From Parasitella parasitica NRRL 2501 (Eukaryota; Fungi; Mucoromycota), in the NCBI GenBank assembly GCA_025201805.1, contig MU619280.1, forward strand, positions 1-32,851: 32,851 nucleotides of DNA. Reading direction: 5' to 3'. The translations under genes and the position numbers were made by a program. The notes beneath the pieces were generated by a model. That model did not search any database, had not been told where the DNA came from, and worked only from the letters and a program-made list of their open reading frames with translations. Below are positions 144-32,851 of the stretch, piece after piece (position 1 is the stretch's first letter; each line of letters starts with the position of its first letter).

Positions 144-1487
144 TCAACTTTTTTTTATAAACGCACAACATTCTGGGGCAAAATCATTTATGTTCTCACA
201 AGCACATAAATGCTCCCATGACCCTAATAATGTTCCCTTTTGAGCACATTTGTGTTCACCGAGAACATCCAGGAGGCCATAGTGGATATCCCTTTGAAAG
301 TGCCCAAAGCCTTCGCAATTATAACATCGTATATTGGTATGAGACGAACCACGACCACCAGAACTATTATCATTTCTAGCACCACGATTTGGATGGCCAC
401 CATGGCCACCACCATGACCACGAAGACCTTTGAATCCCCCACGGGAACCACCACGACCTCGGTAACCACTACGACCATGAGAACCACCACGACCAGACGA
501 ATGCCAAGAGCGCATGTAGTGGAGCAGCTCCTTGGACTCCGCGACTGAAAAATCCATGGGATCATCCACCTGATAATCCATTCCAAGAGAAGATGCCTTC
601 CGAACCGAAGATACACCATCTAAACGATTGCCTTCATAAATGTGCGCAGCCCGAATCACCTCGCTCAGGATCGGATTCTCCATGTCAACATGATCCTTGA
701 TACTGCCTCTAGCTGCCGAGTCCTTCAAACCAGCAATAAACTTATCGACGGCTTCCTCATCCGTCATGCGTGGAATAATCAACTTGATGGTCATGAAGTC
801 TTGTACGTATTGTGTAATAGTCGACAATTGCTTTAAACTACGCATCCTGTCTCGTGCTACGGAAACCGAGTTATCAGGCTTAAAGTAGGCACGCAACTCC
901 GTTTTTAGTTGTAACCAGTTATCCGGAGCAGAATTCAACAATCGCAGGTTTTGATACCATACTTTTGCGGCACCCGTAAGTAATGTTACACCCAATTTAG
1001 CTGACTTGATGTGATCGAGACTCTTGAGATCCGAGTAATCATCTATGGATAGAATCCATGCTTCAATTGTGTGAGGATCTCTGGAACCATCATATTTGCG
1101 AGGTTTTTCAACGAAATCAAAAGCATCATCTGTATGCTTCTTCGAAAGTATCACCTCTTTCAAAATTTCTGCGATTTTTAAGATATCACTGTTGTTGCCT
1201 GCTTCACCAGCAGATGAAGATTCACCTTTGTTCATTTTGTTGTTGTTGAGTGATCCTGGTCCAAAAAATTTACGTGCCAATTCACTTGCTAACTTGTGCC
1301 AATGTTCTTCTCTTTTTATTGTTGATGTCAATCTTTCTTCTTTAGTAAATTGACCACTTTTTGTCCTTCTTAATTTGCTGTTATAATAGTCAATATCGTC
1401 TTGATATTTAAGTTGTTTGATGACCTTTTCTTCAATTTCAAATTGGTTTTTTAACTTCTGGAGGTCTTCTTCAGGTATATTTGACAT
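144..1487 (-). CDS. gag: Ty3/Gypsy-type retrotransposon Gag (capsid domain, RGG-rich linker, broken CCHC zinc knuckle); no pol follows
   Basis: 447-aa ORF. It has a retrotransposon-gag-like core (PRKYDGSRD...EAWI...LLTGAAKVWY...W.QLK.EL...F...ARDRMRSLKQ...YV.DF...F.AGL), an RGG-rich tract, and CYNCEGFGHFQRD(I), which is CX2CX4HX4 with the last Cys missing. It starts just downstream of the PBS and LTR. Confidence 0.9.
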   Translation of the reverse strand: MSNIPEEDLQKLKNQFEIEEKVIKQLKYQDDIDYYNSKLRRTKSGQFTKEERLTSTIKREEHWHKLASELARKFFGPGSLNNNKMNKGESSSAGEAGNNSDILKIAEILKEVILSKKHTDDAFDFVEKPRKYDGSRDPHTIEAWILSIDDYSDLKSLDHIKSAKLGVTLLTGAAKVWYQNLRLLNSAPDNWLQLKTELRAYFKPDNSVSVARDRMRSLKQLSTITQYVQDFMTIKLIIPRMTDEEAVDKFIAGLKDSAARGSIKDHVDMENPILSEVIRAAHIYEGNRLDGVSSVRKASSLGMDYQVDDPMDFSVAESKELLHYMRSWHSSGRGGSHGRSGYRGRGGSRGGFKGLRGHGGGHGGHPNRGARNDNSSGGRGSSHTNIRCYNCEGFGHFQRDIHYGLLDVLGEHKCAQKGTLLGSWEHLCACENINDFAPECCAFIKKS

Positions 1488-1537
1488 TCACCAATCACTT
1501 GAATAAAATAAAAAAAAAAAAAACGATAAATTGGTTC

Positions 1538-1548
1538 AGATGCTACCA
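1538..1548 (-). promoter_or_regulatory. Primer binding site, probably complementary to initiator tRNA-Met
   Basis: TGGTAGCATCT begins 2 nt after the LTR end. It is complementary to a tRNA 3' end ...AGAUGCUACCA, and GCUA-CCA is typical of eukaryotic tRNAi-Met. The primer identity is inferred. Confidence 0.7.
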
Positions 1549-1550
1549 AA

Positions 1551-1705
1551 TGTCGTGTGCAGATAAATATGTTTTAGAGTAAAATTATAGGAAGTATGTA
1601 AAATGTTATATATGAGATAAAAAGATACCTTTATTATTTTAAGATACAATTGATATTTATATACTAATTAAAATGGTTACACACAAAGTCTGTGAGCAAC
1701 TGACA
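1551..1705 (-). repeat. 5' LTR, 155 bp
   Basis: TGTC...GACA termini. On the minus strand it has TATAAATA (1654-1661) followed by AATAAA (1630-1635). It is homologous to 32188-32340 (first 13 plus-strand nt identical, shared CAATTGATATTTATA and GTTACACACAAAGTCTGTG blocks). Confidence 0.9.
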
Positions 1706-1754: not shown

Positions 1755-1836
1755 TGCCAACTGTGAGATTCGAACTCACGCCTCTCTCGAGATCGCAACT
1801 TGAGTGCGACGCCTTAGACCGCTCGGCCAAATTGGC
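1755..1836 (-). tRNA. tRNA-Leu (CAA), intronless
   Basis: Minus strand reads GCCAATTTGGCCGAGCGGTCTAAGGCGTCGCACTCAAGTTGCGATCTCGAGAGAGGCGTGAGTTCGAATCTCACAGTTGGCA. Anticodon arm TCGCA-CT CAA GT-TGCGA, long variable arm, T arm GTGAG-TTCGAAT-CTCAC. Confidence 0.96.
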
Positions 1837-9192: not shown

Positions 9193-12100
9193 ATGATAGA
9201 CTCTGACATAATCATGACTAGTGTAACATCAGCTACAGAATCGCATGTCTTTAATCCGTTTGCCTTTGACATTTTCAAAGCAGTCAGTCAGCTGTCAACC
9301 CTCATAGGCAGTTCAACATTTGGCAGTGTCGACCTCGATTTCCTTCATGGAGCCAATACTTTAACACCCAAAAACCAATTGCTCGACACAGTCTCTAAGG
9401 CTATGATTAACCCTGAATGGACACCCAGCATTGTTCGTTTATTCAGACCCATCGTTATCGATCTCGTTGCTCGTTGGACTTTACCAGGTTTTACTGATTT
9501 CTTAGACTCTGCCCCTGCATCACCCAATGCAAGCAGAACTGTATATAAAATTGAATTAGTTGCAAAGGCCTTTAGTGTTGTGTTTCCTATTGTGCCTCAA
9601 GTGAAAAGGTAAATATCTTATATGGCGATACTACAACTGTTGTTCGCCTACTGACGCCTTCAATATTTTACAATGTAGCTTGGCTGTAACATACTTTACC
9701 CATTCAACCTCCTTATTTGAAAGATTGGACCATTTATGCAACTATAGAGAAATAGAGGTACGGAGCGAAATTCACATTGAATCATAGCCATTGACACTTT
9801 AGGCAGGTTACATCTTCGTTGACAGCTGAATTACAAGATTTACTACTGACAACTTACCGATTACTTGGAATTTCGACATCCACATTCATACCTCTCTGGA
9901 ATTGGGGATCTTTGGTTCAATTGCTTCAGTTTCAGAGCCCTTACATTCGCTACATCACTGTTTTGTGTCTTGGCAAAGTATATGGGCTAAGCGATGCGCA
10001 AATCAAAGGTTTATTGACATCTGTTGTTGGAGCTGGACACTCCTTGGATGAGTCTGACGAGCCTCTCTATACCACGATTGATGGGAATCGTGTTGATCTT
10101 AGATTTTTAAGGTAAGATACATATATCTGCATACGAGCATTTGCAGGGAGCGAGGCACTGATGACAGATAACGTAGTTTGTGGGAGCAGCAACAGTTGGC
10201 ATATGCTCAAATATCTCTTTTACACAATGATTACGATTTGAATAATGGACAGCACCCCGAATTATCAGAAGACGATCTCTGTTCACTTACATGCAACCTG
10301 TGTGGCGTATTGCTTAGTAAAACAGCTTCTGTGGATAAGGAATATTTTTACGACCCCAAGCTCGTGTTGACCAGCACCACATCAAAGAATCTGCATGTTG
10401 TCAGTCTTGCGTTATCAATTGGAGCACCCACATTGCTAGAAGGAGTCACTGGTGCAGGCAAAACAGCACTTGTTGAAGAACTTGCTAGTAGAACTGGGAG
10501 AGGGGCGCAATTGGTAAAAATTCATTTGGGAGATCAAACAGACCCTAAAGTGTTACTCGGTACATACGTATCTACCTCAACGCCTGGTTCATTCCGCTGG
10601 CAAGCCGGCGTATTGACAACCGCCGTTCTAGAAGGACGATGGGTTTTGATCGAGGATATCGATTTAGCTCCTGCTGAAGTTTTGTCTGTACTATTGCCCT
10701 TGTTGGAAACTAGACATTTATTTATTCCTTCTCGTGGTGAAAAGATTAAAGCCAAGGAGGGATTTCAGCTGTTTGGTACTAGGTCATTTGTGCCTACTCG
10801 ATCTGGAAAGAGCATGAGCTCCAGAGGAGGCGAATTAGTGACAGGCGCCAATCTGTGGACCCGAGTGCATGTTGAGCCATTATCCATCCAGGAACTTGAG
10901 ACCGTTGTGCGTCAAAAGTTTACGCATATCGGTGATTTTGCGACACATGTCATGACCCTTTTCCAATCTGTTGTAGGCATGTATCAAGACCCTAGTTTCT
11001 CGACTTTAGCTTCATCTACAATGGGACGATTTCTTTCTACAAGAGATCTAATGAAATGGTGCAATCGCGTCGACATCTTGATTGGAGAGAAATTGAATGA
11101 TAGCACAGAAGTCGGGATGGATTTGACTCTTCGCCAGGACTTATTCAGCGAAGCCAACGATTGTTTCTGTGGCATGATACCCGATTATAATGTGTGGGTA
11201 ACAGTACTAGAGACGCTTGGAAGACCCCTTCAAATCTCTGAAGAGCTAGTGCACAATTATGTTGACCAGTATAAGCCAGCTTTGGAAATTGATGAGTCTA
11301 CTATTCGCATTGGTCGTGTCAATCTTTCATCTCTCGCGGCTCGTGGCAAGCAGAAGCAAAAACAGGCCCTCATCAAAAGAGAAAAGAAGAGACCCTTTGC
11401 TACGACAGGCCATGCGTTGCGTTTAATGGAGAGAATTGCCATTTGTATACATTTGACTGAGCCTGTTTTGCTGGTTGGTGAAACGGGTACTGGTAAGACC
11501 ACTGTGATTCAGCACTTGGCTGATATGATCCATCAAAACTTGGTTGTTGTCAACTTGTCTCAACAGTCTGACAGCTCTGATCTTTTGGGTGGCTTTAAAC
11601 CTGTAGATGGAAAGGTGCTGGCCATTCCTATGAAAGACGAGTTTGAGAGATTGTTCGAAAAGACTTTCTCCGTAAAGAAGAACGGCAAGTTTTTGGACAT
11701 GGTGAGAAAGACGTTTATCCATCAGAAATGGCCCAATTTCGTTACACTTCTGAAGCAGGCTGTCAAAATGTCACAGCAGAAATTTGAAGGCGAGCAAAAC
11801 GCTGAAAGTAAAAGGGTATCTTCTCCCACTCTTCGCAACGCTTGGAAGACATTTTCCAAAAAAGTAGAGGAATTTGAGGTGCAACAGGTGCAATCGCAAA
11901 ACAAGTTTGTATTCAACTTTATGGAAGGCTCGCTTGTAAAGGCTGTTCGCCAGGGTGATTGGATTTTGCTCGACGAAATCAATCTAGCTACTACTGAAAC
12001 CCTAGAGTGTCTTTCTGGCTTACTTCAGGATGCTCATGGCTCACTTTTATTGACCGAAAAGGGTGATGTTGAACCCATAAAGCGTCATCCCAACTTCCGT

Positions 12101-15100
12101 CTCTTTGCCTGTATGAATCCCGCTACTGATGTCGGTAAGCGAGACTTGCCTCCTGGTCTGCGCAACAGATTCACAGAATTTTACGTCCATCCTCCTGATA
12201 ACCGTTATGATGATCTCTTGCAAATTGTTAAACAATATCTTGCTGGAATCGCTTTAGGTGACGAGAGATCGTACGATGATGTAGCTGAATTTTACATGAG
12301 CGCAAAGAAGCTGGCTGCCGAACATAAGCTTGTTGATGGTGCTAACCAACGCCCTCATTTCAGTATGCGTACGTTGGCTCGTGCTTTGACCTATGTTGTT
12401 CAAATTTTTCCAGTCTATGGCTTGAGACGTTCACTTTACGAAGGCTTCTGTATGACATTCCTGACGCAGCTTGACAAGGAAAGTGAAGTGTTGATGAAAG
12501 ATCTCATTTTCAACACTATTCTTCGTGGTGTTCAAAACCCTCAAAACCTCATCACCCAAATTCCTCGCCAACCTAACGAAGATTTCATTCAATTTGGTTA
12601 TTTCTGGTTACAGCAAGGCCAATTCCCTCCTGAAGACGACGCGCGCTACATCTTGACAAACTCTGTAGAAACTAAACTGTATAACCTTGCGCGTGTCATT
12701 ATGTCTAGAAAGTTCCCTGTGCTGATTCAGGGCCCTACGTCTGCGGGTAAAACATCCATGGTAGAATACATGGCAAAGAAGACGGGTCACAGATTTGTCC
12801 GTATCAACAACCATGAGCACACTGATCTTCAGGAGTATCTTGGGACCTATGTCTCAAATAACGAAGGAAAACTCGTCTTTCAAGAAGGTGTATTGGTTGA
12901 AGCCCTCCGTAACGGCTATTGGATTGTTCTTGATGAGCTTAATCTGGCTCCTTCTGATGTCTTGGAGGCCTTGAATCGTTTACTTGACGATAACAGAGAA
13001 TTACTGATACCCGAAACTCAAGAAATTGTGAAGCCCCATCCTCATTTCATGCTGTTTGCTACCCAAAATCCTGCTGGCCTCTACGGTGGTCGCAAGGCAT
13101 TGTCCAGAGCTTTCCGTAACCGTTTTCTTGAGCTTCACTTTGATGATATCCCTGAAGATGAACTAGAGACTATCTTATCAAGACGCTGTGCCATTGCTCC
13201 TTCGTACTGTAAAAAGCTTGTCAAAGTGTATAAAGAGTTGATGGAGCGCAGACAGAGTACTCGTATTTTTGAGCAAAAGCACGGTTTTATCACTCTTCGT
13301 GATCTTTTCCGCTGGGCTGGTCGTGATCCCCAAGGATATCAAGAATTAGCCGAAAATGGTTACATGCTCTTGGCTGAAAGATGCCGTAAGGACGAAGAAA
13401 AAAAGGTCGTGAAGCAAGTTCTCGAACAAGTGATGAAAGTCCAGCTCTCTGAAGATGCAATGTACGACTGCAATAATCTTGAAGAGTTTACCATTTATGA
13501 TCGAATGCTCAAAGAGCACGCGGCAAAGACTGGTGAGGATACCAAACTTGTGTGGACAAAGGCAATGCGTCGTTTGTTTAGTCTTGTAGCTCGTTGTCTT
13601 CGACACAACGAACCAGTGCTGCTTGTGGGCGAAACTGGCTGCGGCAAAACTACCGTCTGTCAGATGCTTGCTGAGACCTATCAGCGTGAACTTCATATTG
13701 TGAATTGTCATCAAAATACAGAAACTGGCGATTTACTGGGTGGCCAGCGTCCCGTTCGTAACAGAGAGGCCAGCGAAGATACTGATAAGCAACGGCAACT
13801 CTTTGAATGGCATGATGGCCCTCTTGTACAGGCCATGAAGGAAGGCCACTTGTTCCTGCTTGATGAAATATCTCTTGCTGATGACTCTGTTCTCGAAAGA
13901 TTGAATTCAGTCCTGGAGCCTAGCCGCCTTTTAGTGCTTGCTGAAAAAGGTGGCAAGCAAGTAGAAGAGCTCTATGGCGCTGCCAACTTTCAATTCTTGG
14001 CTACCATGAATCCCGGTGGTGATTATGGTAAAAAGGAGCTCTCCCCTGCTTTGAGAAACCGTTTCACTGAAATTTGGGTGCCTTCTGTTACTGACAGGGA
14101 TGATCTTACCAAGATTATTGATGAGCAAATGACACATCCTGCTTTGACTGGCTATAGTACCAAGATACTTGATTTCATTTCATGGTATACTCAGGCAATC
14201 GGCCAAAGCCGCACTGTAGTTTCCCTTCGTGATATACTCTCTTGGGTTAAATTCATTAATGTTGCTGTAGATTCTGGTCTCGATGCTGAGCTCAGTTTTG
14301 CTCACGGCGGTTGTATTGTCTTACTTGATGGATTGGGATCACATGGTTCATCCGGCTCATTTCTGTCTGGCCCTTTGCTCAAAGAGTTCAGATTGAAGTG
14401 TCTTCGCCATCTTTCTGGCAAGCCTAATGCAACCGAGCTTGAAATATTGGGTGAAACAAAGGACAAGGTACAGATTGCTGGCGATAAGTTTGCGATCGGT
14501 CCCTTCCATATTCCTCATGGTCCGATGGCCAAGACTAATATCAGATTCACATTGTTGGCTCCCACTACCGCTGACAATGCAATGCGTGTTATTCGCTCAA
14601 TGCAGCTCAAAAAGCCCATCTTGCTTGAAGGTAGTCCTGGTGTGGGTAAAACTAGCTTGGTGTCAGCACTAGCTGCTGCTTCTGGCCACAACTTGGTTCG
14701 TATCAATCTGTCTGAACAAACTGATTTGATGGATCTTTTCGGTTCAGACTTACCTGTTGAAGGCGGCAACAGCGGTGAGTTTGCTTGGAGAGATGCTCCA
14801 TTCCTACAAGCCATGAAGGCCGGTGATTGGGTTTTGTTGGATGAATTGAACCTAGCGTCTCAATCTGTACTGGAAGGTCTCAATTCTTGTTTGGATCATC
14901 GTGGGGCAGTGTATATTCCTGAACTTGACAGAGAGTTCTTCTGTGCCAAGGAATTCCGAGTATTTGGTGCTCAAAATCCCCTTCAGCAAGGTGGTGGTCG
15001 TAAAGGCTTGCCTAAATCGTTTGTCAATCGTTTTACGCAGGTCTATGTCGAGCAATTAACGTCTGACGATCTCCTCTTCATTTGCTCTCATTTGTTTTCT

Positions 15101-18100
15101 GAATTCGACCCTAGCGTAATGGTAAAAATGATTGAATTCAATAACAAAATGTACCAGGAAACCATGATACGTTGCAACTTTGGCCGCAAGGGTAGTCCTT
15201 GGGAGTTTAATTTGCGTGATGTCTTTCGTTGGTTAGAGCTGATGCAAAAAGATCGTGTAACTGATCCTGCTGAATACCTGGACATCATCTACATGCAGCG
15301 TATGCGCACTCACGAAGATCGTGGTCAGATTGTTCAGTTGTACGAATCTGTGTTCAATGTCAAATACGATCGCCCTGTCAAGCCCCATTACGAAGTCACT
15401 ACTACATCGTTCAATGTTGGTCATTCTCGCTTACCCAGAAAGCAAAATGGTAGTTCCATCGATGTATTTGAGCACCAGGATCATGTCCTTCAATCCTTTT
15501 TGTCTCCTCTCGAGTCTCTTATTAAATGCGTTGAATCTTCTTGGATGGCTATCGTTACTGGGCCCACTGCATCTGGTAAAACATCACTTGTTCGTCTCTT
15601 GAGTAAAATGACGGGCAATCGCCTCGAAGAATTTGCCATGAACAATAGTGTGGATACTATGGAACTTCTTGGTGGTTTCGAGCAGGTCGATCTCAATCGT
15701 CATCGTCAAGTTGCTATGGATACGCTCCATGAAATGACTAGTCTTGCATCCAAGAATCTGCTGATGTATTTTTCTACATTGCCTTCTGACAACGAACAGT
15801 ATGGCACAGTCTTGCAGCTCATTCGTCAACTGAATGACTCCTGGTACGCTCTAGAGAGCAAGCAGCAGATGCAACTCTTGGCTGCCGATATAGGGTCTGG
15901 AGAATTGGATTACGCATTGGTATCCAACGTTGTCAGTTGCTTGCAGTCTGCGTCTACTGTTGACCAAGGCGCACAAGCGTCCATTGAGGCTGTGTCTGCC
16001 CTTATCCAAAACCTCCAAAAACTTGAGAAGGAAACTGTTGCTGGTAAATTTGAATGGATTGATGGCCTCTTGATCAATGCTCTCGAAAAGGGCTACTGGC
16101 TTCTTATTGATAATGCCAACATGTGTAATCCTTCTGTCCTCGATCGTTTGAACCCTCTTTTCGAAAACGATGGTGTCCTCATGGTGAATGAACGTGGTCT
16201 TGTCGATGGCGCTGTCAAAGTCATCAAACCTCACCCCAACTTTCGTATGTTTATGACAGTGGATCCTCAAAATGGCGAGCTTTCTCGTGCTATGCGAAAT
16301 CGTGGTATCGAGATCTCGCTTGTGGACTCAAACTGGAACAAGAACTCGGAAGATGTCACCAAGCTCGCGAATTCGCTTGGTGTTCGTGGCCCTAAACTAC
16401 CCATGCTTTTAAATGAGTTGCAAGGAGAGGCTACTGTTCAGCGTAGACAGTTTGGTAAGGGCGAGAATGTTCGTGATTACTTGCTGTTTGCTACTTATTT
16501 GGTTGAACGTTTGCAACGTGGTCAATCCCTCAAGGTTGCTATCAGCGATTCTTTCTTCCAGGTGTTTGTTGATGTCAAGGAGGCTCCTCAGGTGCTTGTT
16601 TCGTTACTTGAATCCAATGTAGACCAAGATATACTGCAAACGATGCTCTCTCCTACAAACTCGCCTTTCCTGATTGGAGGCCAGATGCTTCAAGAAGACT
16701 CTGTGCTTGCTACCATTGCTCTCCAAGGCGCTTATTTGATATACTTGTTGCAGACTTTGAATCCTGAGGATGCTGAATCCGCCAAAAAGATTGAGATCGC
16801 GAGTGATTATTTCTTGGAGCACTTGTCATCCCAAGATTATGGTGTTCGTCTTCGCTGGTTGGGTTACATGTCTCAGCAAGCTGTTTCGACTAAATCCGCC
16901 ATTTTGGAGCGTCTGGGCTATATCATGAAAGAGGTGTATTCTCATCCCTTGTTTACAGAGCTCTCAAAGATTCAGTTAGAAACGAAGGAGGGTGTCACAG
17001 CCAATGCTGCCGTTTTAGGGTATATGCGAGGCGCATATCATTTGCTCATTCGACTTTGCAAACAGGAATACGCTGATAGGAATATGCGCAGTGCCACTCA
17101 GCGTCTTAAAGTCAACAGCTTAACATCTCTGCAACAATCTTATTGCTTTCACGAAGGTCGTTTGAGCGAGAGTCAACTGCTGCATCCTGTTGTATCCAAA
17201 TTGTACCCCTTTTTCGAATCTGTAAAGTCTGCTTTTGCGACTTGGATCAATCAAGGCTACTATCATACCTGTTCATTGTCTACATTTGATGCTTTCAACA
17301 AAATTCTGGATGCCCGCGATTATGCTTGGAACCTTACTCAACTGCAAAGCCTTAGCCTGGACAACCTGTTAATTATTCTAAGGATTATCAAGGACCTCAT
17401 GTCTGCTGATGGTGTAAAATGCGCGCAAATAGACCCTGTATTTGCCCACATTGAAGGCATCATGTCCGGTTTTGACTTCAACACGAGCAGATCAATGAAG
17501 GCGCTGTGGAAGTATTTTGGGCCGTCCACTCTGTCAACTCACTCTTTGCATGAGTTGGAACACGAATTGCACAAGATCAATGCAACCATGAACTGCTACA
17601 AGTATGACTCGGAAGAAACTCTGGAACCTAAATCACTTGTTTTGCGTGCCAAGATTGAAGCAAAGGAAGCTTTAGTTGAAGGTATAGCCACCTTGCATGC
17701 TGTTGATGAGAATGACACACAGAATGCTGAAAAGGTAATTAAATCGCTTGGCAAATTGCCCGAGTACATCAATCGCGAGCTTGAATCATCCGTGTCCAAC
17801 GACCCTTCTATCAGAAGAAATACCTACTGGGATACTGCTTTGATCCCATTGTATGACTACACTAGTATTGTAACTGAGATGGAGTTGATTGCTAATCTGT
17901 ACAATATTGCTTGTGATGCTTCTGATCTGGCTACCATGGAAAATTTGGTCGAGCGAATGCTTGATTTCAGAAAGTTTGCTTTTGATAAAACATCTCGTCC
18001 TCCTCTTGATATAGTCCCTTATCAGCGTCTGATTTGGTTCTTGGATTCCGGAAACACTGCAAACATTTCCACTGCTCTCCCTGGTATGGTTCAGGATGCA

Positions 18101-21100
18101 GCTTACACCTACCATCAACGCTTGTGGCGTACTAGTATGTTCCAAAAGAACCTCTTCCAATTGACACCATCAGAACATCCAGTTGTAAGTATCTGATCTT
18201 TCTGTTGCACATAATAACGATGGTTAATATTTCTTTACAGGATCTTGGGATTACGGAAGGCTCTCTTAGTCTTTTCGAAAGCGTAGAAACACTTGTTTGC
18301 TTGAATATCTTGAGCTCTGTCGAAAAGATGCCTGCTGATGCGTATGAAAATGCCCTTGAGCAACTAAAAAAGCTGCAGTGTTTCCTGACATCTCACGTCA
18401 ATTTGAAGGACAAGAAGGCACTCGAAGTAATAATGTTGATTTCCATGGCTCGTCAGGTAGTGTTGAACAACCATAAATTCATGAATACCTTCTCATTTTT
18501 ATTTTTATGCCTGTAATTTTAGTTATTGAAAGCATCTGCCGATGTTATTCCCAAGGACCATTTTGAAAGCATTTCTCTCGAATTTAACAAGATTGCTTCC
18601 TTCAGCAATGCTCTTTTGAGGACAACCATTTACTCTTCCGAGAATTCAAGTCTTCAATTCGACGCTGCGATGGATGTCTTGGAGAGCGTCATAAAAATGA
18701 TGGAAAAAGTCGATTTCAATGCCTATTACTCAACTGCCGTGTCTGCAATCTTGGGCTCCGTCCGTCATTTCAGAAGCAGAGATGATGCTTGCTTCTATTC
18801 TGCTGCTGGTAAGGCCCGAGTTCTTTTGGGCTTGGCATTTGTATCTGCTTATATTCCAGACTATCCAGTCGATCCTACTTCTGAGCCTCGACTTCACGTC
18901 AATCTGTTGACTACCAAAAAGAAGGAATATCTGGACAATATTCAAGTGCGCACGAGCATTGAAAAGATGTATACCGGCAACACTACCAACCAAGAAATCA
19001 AATCGCAGCAATCCGGTTTGGACGCGGTCAACAGTGAGCTTGCTCATAGCGCAACCGTTTTTTCTCTTCGCCCTGTGCAATCACAGCTGGAAGAAATCTT
19101 TGTGGATCTGCGCTACCTTCAAAAGAGCATGCTTGACAAGAATGTGGAAAGCCTATTGAATGACCTTGAAGCTGATGGTGTCGATTCTGTCCTGCAACGC
19201 GAGGCTCTTCTGCAAGGAAATGCTCTCCAGTTTATCGATAGAGTGCACCATAGATTCCCCTTGTATAGAGACATCCTCCAGCCCCTTGTTGTTGCTGTAG
19301 ATGACATCAAATATGGCTTGCGCATATTGACAGCCAACGCACGCAAGGATTCTGCTGATCAGTTTCTGTCTGATATTATTAGGCTTTTGGTGCGCGATCC
19401 TGACGTTTCTCATCACGCTCATGACCTTGATTGGCATACGCTGGCCACGCCTGACAAGATTACTACCCTCAAGCGAGTTGTCTTTGAGAGAGCCCCTACT
19501 AGCAGGAAATGGGCATTCTATCTTCGTCTTTTGATTGTTATTCTTCAACGTCTCGTTATTGGTGTCAACACCCACGCATACTTGAAGACAGACGATCTTG
19601 TTTCTGTCAATGTCTTGTTTAATGAAATTATTCAAGTTTGGAAGTCTGCTGAAGAGTACAAGCGTAAGATGGCTGTCGAAAAGGAAGCATTGTTCAAGAC
19701 GCGCGCTAGAAAGTACGAGCCTCCTACTGACCAAGAACTCGAAGAGGAAGATCTCAACAAGCTCTTTGCCAACTTCCATGAGGACTTTGCTGATCTGGCT
19801 CTTGAGGACGATGGACAATCCAGAAAGAGTAATGTACCTGATAAAGTTGAGGAAGAGTCCGTTCTTGACGATGAGGATATTTACCGTATTGGCCATCTCC
19901 ACCGTGTTCTCTTTGAAACTTACAGCCGCGATGCATGTGTGCGCTCCGACAAATCTTGGGATCGTGAAGCTATTCAATCTTATGCTGTTGCTAGTCAGTT
20001 GGCTTCTATGGCTAATTCTGCATTTAGTGATGCTACGGACCGTATCTGCAATGCTGGTCATCTTCGTGTCACTTCATTGACCATCAATCGACTCGAGTCT
20101 GAAAATTCGTTTGGTATGACCAGCGATAACATTTATGATTTCTATCAGAGCGAAAATGTGGGTGAAGCTAAGCGAGTCGAACCTGTTGTTAATCGTTTCA
20201 AGGCTCGTGTTGTTCAGCTGATTGAACAATGGCCAGAACATGCTATTTTGGAGCAACTGGTTGTCATCTGTGATCGTATCTTGACATTCTCAATCTTGTC
20301 GCCTGTTGCCAAGTTTTTGACCGGCATAGAGCTATTATTGCAAAAATCCGAAGATTGGGAAGCTTATGCTGCTAAACATGTCTCATTGAAGGATCAGCGC
20401 GAGGAATTGATCAGCTTGATTATCAGTTGGAGACAATTGGAGCTTAATTGCTGGCCAAAGCTCCTGGCTGCTCAGGAGCAGTACCATCAGGATGCTGCTT
20501 TCAAATGGTGGTTCCATCTGTACGACACTGTCAACAATACCTCTTTTGACTCTAATGACGAGGAGGAAAACGATAAGAATACGCGTGAATTACTCGGTGC
20601 TCTTGATCAGTTTGTCCAGACATGTTCCATTATCGAGTTGGAGCCACGTCTTAAAATGATTGACACTTTCTATCATCAAACCAAAGTCCAGGCACAGCTT
20701 TCAACGTTCGAAGGAGAAAAACTGAACTATGAGAGAACTGCTACCATTTTGCGTAACGTCTACTTGTATTATCATCAATTCCAGGAGCATGCAAACACGA
20801 TGCTCTCTCAACTACGTAAGCCTGTCGAGAAGGACCTGAAAGATTTCGTCAAGATAGCCACCTGGAAGGATGTCAATATTTACGCTCTTCGTCAGAGTGC
20901 TGCAAAGACTCATAGACAACTCCACAAATGCATTCGCAAGTATCGCGAAGTATTGAACAACTCCATGTTGACAGTTATTGCCAATTATAACGAGGAACAT
21001 GCCATGTATCAATACGGCGACGACAAGCGGTATGCCAAAGATATCAATCAAGGCCTTATGGATCAACTCTCTCGGCCTAGTGCATGGACTGGCGAAACCA

Positions 21101-25524: not shown

Positions 25525-25950
25525 TTTTATAATTATCGTATTATTATATTTTGGGTTTTTTTTTCAAAGTAAATAAAAAAATGCTGTTTGAAAAAGCCAT
25601 CTTCAAGTCAACAATTGCCATGCCGTTATCTATCGATAACAGAAATAGCTGATTATCTATAACAAGCCATAAATGTACATACTTCGCCATGTATTTACCT
25701 AATTGTCATATATTTACGTTTCCCTTTGGTTCAATATTAGTTTTTATTTATATGAACACAGAAACAATATAATAATTTATTGTTTTATGACCAATAGCTA
25801 CGCTGGACATCACGTATACTGGGATATGTTTGTAATGAAGAGGATAGGACTTTCCAGCTTCGATTGGTAACTGTAGTATTGACATCTTGATTCAGGATTC
25901 AATATAAGCGCTATTCAGACATAACACAATGCTTCAAAATCACAGTTGAC

Positions 25951-25986
25951 TAAATGGTTACACGCAAAGTCTGTGTGTACCTGACA
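25951..25986 (-). repeat. Fragment of the same LTR family (U3-end 36 bp)
   Basis: TAAATGGTTACACGCAAAGTCTGTGTGTACCTGACA matches the last 36 plus-strand nt of the 32188-32340 LTR at 32 of 36 positions. Confidence 0.8.
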
Positions 25987-26423
25987 CCCCTGATTACAGT
26001 TCACAATGCGTAAAGTGAGCCGAAAAAGGTAGTTTATCTAAAATTTATTGAATTTTGCCAATAACACTGGATATATTATATTCAGAAAAGTAGCCAATGC
26101 GAACACTTGATAATACCAGTAATCTTTTACTGTATATAACTTGTAAAAATAAAACTTTATGTCAACAGCCGCCATTACCGTTCGCGAATGTTACACTTTT
26201 GATCCCCTACATGTGTTTTGCTCGGTATTTGAGCGTCATAACAAATTAGCCATATGGCATTTAATAGAATTATTTTTTTATTTGTATAATGAGAACGAGA
26301 TATTCGCAATTCTTTTATATCTCGCCAAAGTTAGACGTATGCCACTCAACCCGTGAAACTCACTGTTCACTTGTTTGTCTTTTTTGCCACATCTTGGTTG
26401 CATCTACTCCAAACTGATCATTT

Positions 26424-30331: not shown

Positions 30332-30476
30332 TTCAAGATGGAAAAAGCTAAGGTTAGGGATCTGCATCCTACTTGACGTATTTATATTACAATGGAAAAC
30401 TTGGCCGCAGCGATGCAATGTAAACAGCCGCGGTTTACAGAAAATTGTGCAATTACAGTACATCCAAAATCCTTAT

Positions 30477-31386
30477 TTATTGAATATACTTGTGGAGAAA
30501 TTTTCTGTGAAAATCAGAACGCAACATGTCATTGACAAATCTCTTTTTAGGTTTATCGTCTAGTCCTCTTGCTTGGTTCTTGAAAATCACATCATCATCC
30601 CATCTACAACACAAAATGTTGGTTTTAGTGACTCAAAAAACTATTTTTTTTTTTTTTTGCCAAGATTGCAACCTCTCACGATCTTGTCAAAATACTGTAC
30701 CTTCTCTTGACGCTGAAATCACGTTTTTCGCCTCCAATGTTTAATAATGGGTTGCCCTCCATTGCCTCCTGTTCTTTTTCAGCTTCTTCTTCCTCTCTTG
30801 CTTCACGTTCTTGTCGTTCCTTTTCCTCTGCACGTTCTTTACGAATACGCTGTAACGTCGCTAGTAGTTCTGCTGCATTATCATCATCATCGTCGTCATC
30901 GTCGTCATCGTCATCACTGACAGAAGATAGAATGCTTTAAACACGAGTAGATCACAGTCGCGTATTGCAAGCTTACCTACTACTACTCCCACCGCCATCA
31001 CTCTCTCCATCACTATCATCTTTATCGAGTTTCGCTAACCTTTCAGCTTCTTCCATTAATTTTTGTTTCTCTTGGTTTATTGGTTCTTCCTCTTGCTTTA
31101 TCAAACGAGTTGTGGATGCACCACCTTCTTTTTCTTCATAATACTCCTTCTCTGCTCTTCTCAATTCCTCTAATAGCTGTTCTCTGTCACCAATTTCATC
31201 GACAGTACCTTGTCCAGGTTGTCTAAACTTGAGCTTTGTATGTGAAGCAATATCACGAGCACTGTATTGAAAACTGGGTGCTTTGCTATCATTGCCTCTG
31301 GCAGGATCAAATGTAGGACGAGCAGCGGTAGTCTATGATAAAATGTATTGGCATTTGTGATGCTTTCCTTTTACTTAGCTTACCAT
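30477..31386 (-). CDS. CWC15: Pre-mRNA splicing factor Cwc15/Cwf15 (about 233 aa, 4 exons)
   Basis: Exons 31386-31384 (ATG only), 31332-30977, 30916-30701 and 30603-30477 give 702 nt. Motifs: [14 protein letters not shown]...SHTKLKFRQ, poly-Asp, GNPLLN, and [17 protein letters not shown]...[18 protein letters not shown]. Confidence 0.96.
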
Positions 31387-32187
31387 GGTCTAATACGGAT
31401 TTTTTATACACTGCAAAGAGAAGGATAAAAGAAAAAAATTGCAACTGAAGCCTATATACTGTAATTGTTTATGTGACATCACTTTGAGCTTCTTACATTT
31501 GATTGAATGAAACTTGAAGCCTTAAATGTTCACAATGGAATTATATACAGTACAGGATGCGAGGTGATGAGTAAATTTCTCAGCTTTCTTTGTAGATTGA
31601 AGAAGTCTTATATATAATGCTAGCTTTTCTAGTATTTCCCATCAAAGCTGTGCGCCTTCCTTTTTTTATATCATAATCAGACTAATACATATTTTGATTG
31701 TTCATCTAACCCATTAGTATAGCTAATTCACCAAAGAACATCGATCCAATATGGAGCAAACACGGATTCATAGTTGTTTAACTTTCGAAATAAAAACAAG
31801 AGACGCTAACATAAAACGGTGTTTACAACTATATCAATATACGTATATATATTAAGGATATAATTTTATGACAAGAAAAGAAATAGAGACGAGTGTGGCC
31901 CACCTGCAATAGTAAGAAGTTATGTTGCATATAATAAAACTGGTTTCTAAGTAAATGTTGATCCAGAATGAATTTCAATCATATAACATTTGGTTTCATA
32001 AAAGCAATTAGCTGGAGTTATTATTTGATACTAGTGCAACATTAAAGTTTTACTTCAACGTTGTAACGAACATGATATCAGATCAGATGTACAAAAAAAA
32101 AGCAATGAGCGAAGGCTTGGGTAAGCGAAAACAAAAGACACAGTTCATAGCAAATCTTACAAAAGGCTAATCACAGAGTACTAAAAT

Positions 32188-32340
32188 TGTCGTGTGCAGA
32201 GATGTGTTAGTTTTGTGCTGCTTTAATAAGTGTATATAAAATATGAGTAAGAGATGAAAGATAGATCTTTATTCTTTTGTATTCAATTGATATTTATAAT
32301 AACTAAAATTGTTACACACAAAGTCTGTGTGTATCTGACA
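32188..32340 (-). mobile_element. Solo LTR (153 bp) with 4-bp target-site duplication AAAT
   Basis: TGTCGTGTGCAGA...TCTGACA flanked by AAAT at 32184-32187 and 32341-32344. Homologous to 1551-1705. No adjacent PBS. Confidence 0.88.
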
Positions 32341-32353
32341 AAATGAGAAAAAA

Positions 32354-32426
32354 TGGAGACACCGGGGATTGAACCCGGGGCCTTTCGCATGCAAAGCGAA
32401 TGTGATAGCCACTACACTATATCCCC
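32354..32426 (-). tRNA. tRNA-Ala (TGC)
   Basis: Minus strand reads GGGGATATAGTGTAGTGGCTATCACATTCGCTTTGCATGCGAAAGGCCCCGGGTTCAATCCCCGGTGTCTCCA. Anticodon arm TTCGC-TT TGC AT-GCGAA, G3-U70 Ala identity pair, and a T6 terminator at 32348-32353. Confidence 0.96.
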
Positions 32427-32490
32427 AATCGTTGGATTTTCAAATTTTTTATTTGATAAATTGGAGAGGTAGCGTAATGAGATATTGCAT

Positions 32491-32529
32491 TGGGTCGATG
32501 GTATCGATGGCATCGATACCATCGACTCA
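32491..32529. repeat. Near-perfect 39-bp palindrome
   Basis: TGGGTCGATGGTATCGATG-G-CATCGATACCATCGACTCA: 19-bp arms, 1 mismatch, 1-nt spacer. Confidence 0.9.
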
Positions 32530-32851
32530 TTTAATACTTAGCTCAAAAAGGGGTTATTCAAAAATAAACAAATCATTCGACTATATGATTTTTTTATCAT
32601 TAAAACCATACTCTTGAGTAAACTAAGCATTGCATCATCTTAACATCATATAATTTTGGTTCACTATATTTTTAGATTCTCGATATCTATCTTTGCTGTC
32701 GAGATATTCCCAAAGAACCAGATTTTGCAAATTTTGCAGATTTTACAGCATATGGTCCTATAACAAGTACCAAATTTTGCAATTAAATCATGTCCAAGTT
32801 CCTAAGTAAAGTAATAAAGCACGTTTTGTTACACCTACCGGTATTAAACAT

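Follow-up and report, generated by a model that had tools for sequence, protein, structure and literature searches.

We analyzed DNA of Parasitella parasitica NRRL 2501 (contig MU619280.1 of assembly GCA_025201805.1; this whole stretch of 32,851 nt is called the window), in which tRNA genes are followed by long terminal repeats (LTRs) of one retrotransposon family. We assign these LTRs to a recently active, chromodomain-less Ty3/gypsy lineage of Mucoraceae with at least three LTR subfamilies and an element of approximately 5 kb, here called the Mucor-type element. Further, we propose that its integrase directs integration into an interval approximately 12-100 nt downstream of mature tRNA 3' ends. 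We estimate the probability of both parts of this reading, taken together, at about 0.82. The original prediction, made from the letters of the window, had proposed a Ty3/gypsy lineage of Mucorales whose independent insertions are aimed at tRNA 3' flanks, and this interpretation was supported.

LTRs of the family are located downstream of tRNA genes

We compared the two LTRs of the window with the genome of the same fungus by BLAST and obtained 58 and 50 matches. These matches formed 58 clusters, and 54 loci were retrieved (contigs of the genome are designated below by C-numbers, retrieved loci by L-numbers). An nhmmer profile built from 32 full copies detected 73 LTR pieces, and ARAGORN with intron detection identified 36 tRNA genes in the retrieved loci. 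Inspection for tRNA genes covered 49 clusters; the other nine (C6, C20, C25, C96:109882, C191, C211:14280, C222, C278 and C11:4756) lay outside it. We observed that 35 of the 49 inspected clusters abutted a tRNA gene and 14 had no adjoining tRNA. All 35 were located on the 3' side of the tRNA, and at least 21 anticodon types were hit.

Measured from the tRNA end, the first LTR edge detected by the profile was located at 12-104 nt (median approximately 50), with one value of 186 nt. The 186-nt spacer was occupied, from approximately +55, by an LTR of a third subfamily, approximately 135 bp long. This subfamily was found behind tRNA genes at no fewer than eight loci, the one with the 186-nt spacer included; copies were located, for example, in L004 (C16:319469-319609), L054 (C102:105879-106002), L050 (C27:266642-266703) and L042 (4100-4230). 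When we searched the flanks of the 36 tRNA genes for words of the LTR termini, the first such word was present at +12 to +92 (median +49) in 33 downstream flanks, while upstream flanks contained these words in only 8 of 36 cases, scattered across 10-193 nt. On C136, LTRs were located 53 and 67 nt behind two tRNA-Gly genes. Most insertions lay 20-60 nt past the first T-run. Either the RNA polymerase III (Pol III) terminator or the 3' flank had been suggested as the target; the flank agrees with the observed distances, but the terminator itself does not.

Further, we examined a sample centred on tRNA genes and not on LTRs. It consisted of 63 tRNA genes obtained by a genome search with Rfam RF00005 and chosen regardless of LTRs. 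A family LTR was present within 300 bp downstream of 23 of the 63 genes and within 300 bp upstream of none, a count that rests on coordinates (two-sided sign test, p approximately 2e-7). No family LTR was found within 300-400 nt upstream of the 36 inspected tRNA genes either. Even if the genome had 500 tRNA genes, their +1 to +110 intervals would make up less than 0.2% of its 32.8 Mb, which gives the chance expectation. The predicted association with tRNA 3' ends is therefore well beyond chance. Among five control tRNAs, three were followed by LTR-derived sequence when the third subfamily was counted, so the true occupancy is probably above one third.

Within the window, ARAGORN detected two tRNA genes only, tRNA-Ala(TGC) and tRNA-Leu(CAA), both on the minus strand, and Rfam agreed. 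The tRNA-Ala(TGC) gene is located at 32353..32427 (ARAGORN; Rfam RF00005 with 64.1 bits at 32354-32426). It is directly followed on the minus strand by a run of six T (32353-32348), which reads as the Pol III terminator, then by CTC, ATTT (32344-32341), a solo LTR of 153 bp with the ends TGTCAG...CACGACA (32340-32188) and a further ATTT (32187-32184). The two ATTT copies (AAAT on the plus strand), one proximal to the tRNA and one distal, form a 4-bp target-site duplication that could be read at both edges of the LTR. The original prediction had placed this LTR 13 nt past the tRNA end and 7 nt past the T-run on the same strand, with this duplication, and was exact in each respect. The subfamily of this LTR was named Ala-type; eight genomic copies are at least 95% identical to it.

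The tRNA-Leu(CAA) gene (1755..1836, minus strand; ARAGORN; Rfam 56.7 bits) is followed, 49-50 nt downstream, by a 154-bp 5' LTR in the same orientation (1551..1704, minus strand), so that the second tRNA of the window also has a family LTR on its 3' side, as had been noted. This LTR represents the Leu-type subfamily, with 11 copies at 94% identity or more. The two LTRs of the window had been described as alike at their termini and different in the middle; we found approximately 76% identity overall, and they belong to two subfamilies. Two nt past the 154-bp LTR lies a primer-binding site (PBS), TGGTAGCATCTGAACC (1533..1548, minus strand), which is likewise present behind the 5' LTRs on C179, C247 and C360. 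A gag open reading frame (ORF) comes next (147..1487, minus strand); it spans 447 codons and contains a degenerate Zn knuckle. Retrotrans_gag and zf-CCHC were detected in an 86%-identical copy (L042), and the final approximately 46 codons of the window ORF match other repeats. This copy is incomplete, as the contig ends at position 1.

Insertions are independent, unoriented and repeated

Perfect 4-bp duplications were present at 17 of the 33 full LTRs (chance 1/256 for each) and showed no consensus; ATTT, CTAA, GATG, CCAG, CATG and GTAG are examples. Full LTRs that lacked a duplication were mostly 5' LTRs followed by a PBS or 3' LTRs preceded by a purine tract; these are the ends of longer elements. 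The perfect duplications without consensus show that the insertions were independent events, as had been proposed.

Relative to the tRNA gene, 14 LTRs had the same orientation and 17 the opposite one. The co-orientation described for both window cases is thus correct for them but is not a general rule, and a fixed co-orientation with the tRNA was ruled out by this count.

At many loci, stubs of 8-15 nt from an LTR terminus were located between the tRNA and an intact LTR. We also observed nested clusters in which LTRs were split by younger LTRs, for instance on C254. Both are expected if new copies enter at approximately the same distance from the tRNA and displace older copies outward. For each main subfamily, eight copies matched the window copies at 95% identity or more, most of them within clusters abutting tRNA genes. 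At L006 (C96:90576-91009), one solo LTR separates two convergent tRNA-Leu(AAG) genes that have identical 25-nt 3' flanks; its distances to the two genes are 75 and 38 nt.

The element has Ty3/gypsy structure and a short integrase tail

The LTR ends TGTCAG...CACGACA were present in 33 full copies, with a PBS after 5' LTRs and a polypurine tract (PPT) before 3' LTRs. The family PBS starts with TGGTAGC, as does the initiator-tRNA-type PBS of Ty3. On C247 (L042), an ORF of 583 codons stands behind the 5' LTR and the same PBS; Retrotrans_gag, a CCHC knuckle and an aspartic protease were detected in it, with RVT_1 after them. On C211 (L035) we detected RVT_1, RT_RNaseH, Integrase_H2C2 and rve, followed by a purine tract (GGGAGGAAGGTAG) and an LTR; C58 (L043) has the same integrase end and then an LTR. 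Pieces of these three copies gave, on Pfam, the order gag, zf-CCHC, protease, RVT_1, RT_RNaseH, Integrase_H2C2, rve. This is the order of Ty3/gypsy elements (gag, protease, reverse transcriptase, RNase H, integrase) and confirms the identity assigned earlier. The layout of the whole element would accordingly run LTR, PBS, gag, protease, reverse transcriptase, RNase H, integrase, PPT, LTR. Its length of approximately 5 kb was pieced together from overlapping copies, no single uninterrupted copy having been observed whole.

Internal parts of the element were frequently located at contig ends or read as N. Runs of N of 1.2-2 kb adjoin several LTRs that have no tRNA beside them; they may be assembly gaps within elements and limit statements on full-length copies. 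Such runs are located in L044 (1-1956 and 3138-4787), L046 (6215-7650), L047 (2391-4113), L049 (3590-4805) and L035 (5009-6370).

The integrase C-terminus had been named as the place to look for a chromodomain or a targeting domain. The tail is short, only approximately 58 aa past the GPY motif. No chromodomain (PF00385) was detected in the C-terminal 138 aa of two integrase copies, even when E values as high as 10 were accepted, and none of the Mucorales integrase homologues contained PF00385. Pfam scans thus ruled out a chromodomain or other known targeting domain at this end of the protein. By sequence, the closest solved integrases were those of prototype foamy virus and Ty3 (7q5b, E 1e-21).

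Further, an alignment revealed a short motif, W-Y-x-P-x-x-x-R-A, at the extreme C-terminus of the integrase across Mucorales, right after the SH3-like GPY domain. Mucor and Rhizopus arrhizus have it as K-S-W-Y-I-P-R-x-A-R-A, Lichtheimia and R. microsporus as P-W-Y-D-P-T-x-S-R-A, and its W, Y, P and R are nearly invariant. We consider the tail a candidate targeting peptide.

The downstream position is found in other Mucor-type genomes

Homologues of the integrase were present across Mucorales, with identities of 70% in Mucor velutinosus (partial), 60-62% in Rhizopus arrhizus, approximately 50% in Lichtheimia, 50% in Absidia and 44% in Circinella. The Rhizopus and Lichtheimia elements have LTR ends TGTC..CACGACA and a PBS starting with TGGTAGC, as in the Parasitella family. 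The PBS of the main family varies by species (..GCATCTGAACC in the window genome, ..GCAGCAGAACC in M. lusitanicus).

In Mucor lusitanicus CBS 277.49 we examined a locus of 24 kb (L064). All four of its tRNA genes were followed by LTR elements, 35-71 nt downstream. One of these is a complete element of approximately 5.5 kb (9366-14922) from a second, distant family, with 126-bp LTRs, a gag approximately 29% identical and the PBS TGGTAGCAGCAGC. It starts 44 nt behind a tRNA-Leu(AAG) gene and is wedged between this gene and a convergent tRNA-Ser(AGA) gene. In M. velutinosus (L055), a 3' LTR was located 47 nt behind a tRNA-Thr gene (one case). The same 3' pattern is therefore present in three Mucor-type genomes. 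At the integrase-homologue loci of Lichtheimia, Circinella and Rhizopus (L056, L057 and L061-L063), we found no tRNA within 10 kb, or collapsed repeat contigs; these loci were chosen via protein matches, which mostly pick old fragments. L055 also contains a tandem array (11503-19160); its five units measure 1.53 kb, are 98-99.5% identical to one another and contain one DDE_3 transposase gene each.

Some LTRs have no tRNA beside them

Several observations weigh against directed integration downstream of tRNA genes, first of all the 14 inspected clusters without an adjoining tRNA. Several of these can be explained by the far LTRs of elements, by contig ends or by N runs. On C247 and C360, the 5' LTR belongs to a long element that runs off the contig, so that its other end, and any tRNA there, would fall beyond the assembly. 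LTRs on C211, C58:1137 and C143:38k stand directly behind integrase coding sequence, and those on C11, C136:85.8k and C186 adjoin N runs. On C186 a tRNA-Asp gene is located 1.8 kb away, with LTR-like sequence intervening. We searched the loci without tRNA with Rfam at the gathering threshold and found no other small RNA genes, and a relaxed ARAGORN search in pseudogene mode gave only noise.

The clearest case is C12:360075-360232, a clean solo LTR; ATTG is duplicated at its edges, and no tRNA is located within 4.8 kb of it. Together with C58:4376, C19 and position 25950 of the window, it looks like a real off-target insertion. The window sequence in question is a fragment of approximately 37 nt resembling the 5' end of the LTR (TGTCAGGTACAC..; 25950..25986, minus strand). 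It lies within a divergent LTR-like stretch at approximately 25800-25987, and ARAGORN and Rfam detected no tRNA beside it in the window.

Further observations belong here. We found no empty orthologous site in the reads of four public runs, as the contigs all broke at the repeat. The X5 and X6 read contigs carry the LTR edge, one contig ending at 32214, and reads of the divergent strains X10 and X12 aligned only to the coding part, 30475-31349. Of other Pol III genes, the single U6 gene (one gene only) had no LTR on its contig, and 5S genes were not found by the genome search. Finally, the targeting pattern is inferred from fixed copies and not from de novo integrations.

Proposed mechanism of targeting and alternative explanations

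We propose the following course of events. The integrase would be aimed at an interval approximately 12-100 nt past the mature tRNA 3' end, with a mode of 35-75 nt. It would make a staggered cut of 4 bp, irrespective of sequence and orientation. Further insertions into the same interval would displace older copies outward and leave LTR-end stubs of 8-15 nt beside the tRNA. Recombination between LTRs would then yield solo LTRs such as 32188-32340. Our best guess for the tether is that the integrase binds a component of the Pol III complex on the 3' part of the gene, namely TFIIIC on the B box. This contact might run through the W-Y-x-P-x-x-x-R-A tail past the SH3-like GPY domain. The B box is located approximately 20 nt inside the 3' end of the tRNA gene, and in yeast TFIIIC occupies the gene's 3' part together with the terminator region. 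Because of this position, an integrase tethered to TFIIIC would reach exactly the 3' flank. A tether of the TFIIIC type has likewise been proposed for Dictyostelium TRE3 (PMC5911963).

Targeting could also be real with a cue other than the Pol III machinery. The integrase, or a partner from the host, would then recognise either a conserved DNA element of the tRNA 3' flank or local chromatin, such as the border of the nucleosome-free region or the first nucleosome downstream. Taken together, we consider these two forms unlikely, though they fare best among the alternatives. A flank motif does exist. We observed A[G/T]A[C/T]GT, often as ..GTGAGACGTTT, at +23 to +36 behind tRNAs of many anticodons, sometimes as a small palindrome AACGT-N3-ACGTT followed by Ts; examples are L005 (C179:46600-46640), L032 (C226), L036 (C220), L050 (C27) and L054 (C102). 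It was present in 20 of 36 downstream flanks and 2 of 36 upstream flanks (shuffle mean 3.4, maximum 9 in 500), at +23 to +36 in 15 flanks, and also in M. velutinosus (L055 20295-20305). Nearly all insertions were located just distal to it. However, approximately 16 of the 36 flanks were hit without having the motif, among them those of the window tRNA-Ala (+13), tRNA-Leu(TAA), tRNA-Arg(TCG) and tRNA-Leu(AAG), and the distance from motif to insertion varied from 0 to approximately 40 nt. The motif may itself be a protected functional element, for example a hairpin and T run serving as a back-up terminator. It may be preserved by selection as such a Pol III terminator, or it may bind a protein and thereby position integration.

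We also considered whether integration is random or weakly biased and selection purges all copies except those in harmless space behind tRNA genes. All our data come from fixed genomic copies, and a few copies do lie away from tRNAs (C12, C19, C58 and window 25950), as such retention would allow. However, most of the youngest copies (95-99% identical) are already in clusters abutting tRNAs. The occupied interval is just approximately 90 nt wide and strictly one-sided (23 downstream and 0 upstream for the 63 tRNAs), although the genome offers abundant other intergenic DNA, and the LTR-end stubs point to repeated insertion at an almost equal distance. The interval is narrow and one-sided, a consensus is lacking, orientation is random, hits recur at the same distance, and very young copies lie in clusters abutting tRNAs. 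Taken together, these features argue for directed integration and not for selective retention, which we regard as highly improbable. Finally, tRNA-LTR pairs could have spread jointly, as blocks, through segmental duplication or gene conversion, or tRNAs could have moved to sites beside LTRs. Some tRNA-Leu(AAG) genes with shared flanks and inverted pairs (C96:90576 and 90926) suggest this, but it is already contradicted and retains hardly any probability, since at least 21 anticodon types, differing spacers and both orientations do not fit block duplication, and the own 4-bp duplication of each solo LTR marks the LTR as the inserted part.

Comparison with known elements

Directed integration by the Mucor-type element has its closest analogue in Skipper-2 (formerly DGLT-P). 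Spaller et al. 2016 (PMC5006619) describe this dictyostelid Ty3/gypsy chromovirus as the earliest example of an LTR element on the downstream side of tRNA genes, at 7-136 nt. Both are Ty3/gypsy LTR elements that occupy a tRNA-downstream interval, 12-104 nt in our case. They differ in the integrase, as that of Skipper-2 has a C-terminal extension of 99-192 aa with a group II chromodomain, while that of the Mucor-type element has approximately 58 aa past GPY and no chromodomain. Most Skippers have a polypyrimidine tract in place of the PBS, whereas the Mucor-type element has a canonical TGG PBS (TGGTAGCATCTGAACC). The hosts are an amoebozoan and a fungus, and the downstream habit is most likely convergent.

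Ty3 and its fungal relatives Tj1, Tyl3/Ylt1/Tyl6 and beta/Tca8 are likewise fungal Ty3/gypsy elements located at Pol III genes in both orientations, and the Ty3 integrase is homologous (Ty3 intasome, PDB 7Q5B). However, their insertion sites are located upstream, 1-30 nt from the start of the tRNA (for Ty3, via TFIIIB; review PMC5911963), whereas the Mucor-type element inserts downstream and in a much broader interval. Its duplication of 4 bp also sets it against the Ty3 group. TRE3 of Dictyostelium shares the tRNA-downstream interval (40-150 nt), and B-box/TFIIIC recognition is suspected for it (PMC5911963). It is a LINE-type element that uses target-primed reverse transcription and has a fixed orientation, while the Mucor-type element is of LTR type, uses an integrase and has random orientation.

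For Rhizopus oryzae/delemar, which belongs to the same fungal order, Ma et al. 2009 (PMC2699053) state that Ty3/gypsy LTR elements are often found together with tRNA genes. The main text of that paper gives no side, distance, orientation or mechanism, unlike the data presented here for the Mucor-type element. The Rhizopus elements are similar to it in integrase (60-62% identity), LTR ends (TGTC..CACGACA) and PBS (TGGTAGC). According to a 2018 review, fungal tRNA-targeting elements all insert upstream and downstream insertion occurs only in dictyostelids (PMC5911963). We found no description of 3' targeting in Mucorales in the open full-text literature, most subscription journals being outside this search. 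The downstream habit of these LTRs had been suspected to be undescribed for fungi, and the open literature searched indeed describes downstream targeting for the dictyostelid TRE3 and Skipper-2 only (PMC5006619, PMC5911963). Targeting of Pol III genes by Ty3/gypsy elements is known; what sets the present case apart is the location on the 3' side, the fungal host and the lack of a chromodomain.

Other features of the window

Two features are located on the 5' side of tRNA-Ala. The first is a near-perfect palindrome of 33 nt (32494-32526) with two 16-nt arms and one central base, approximately 70 nt from the gene. The second is a very high-copy repeat (32680-32851) with many divergent copies; its contig depth in public runs was approximately 100-300x that of the flanking unique sequence.

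Significance

Tentatively, and at somewhat less than even odds, we suggest a wider conclusion: a Mucorales-wide chromodomain-less Ty3/gypsy lineage may have independently evolved integration into tRNA 3' flanks, as the first fungal LTR elements to do so, via a new tether between integrase and host. In such a tether the C-terminal W-Y-x-P-x-x-x-R-A tail could possibly contact TFIIIC, or else a factor that sits on the flank motif at +23 to +36. The lineage, which has no chromodomain and a very short integrase tail, points to a different host tether at the 3' ends of Pol III genes. Mucor lusitanicus is genetically tractable: it can be transformed, and RNAi and heterochromatin mutants exist, so that targeting can be tested directly.

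For annotation, it matters that probably one third or more of the tRNA genes in the genome carry such LTRs and that the clusters break assemblies. Targeting of Pol III genes is the textbook case of retrotransposon safe havens in compact genomes and a model for steering integrases. A young, abundant and strictly downstream lineage in fungi would be a clear case of convergent evolution.

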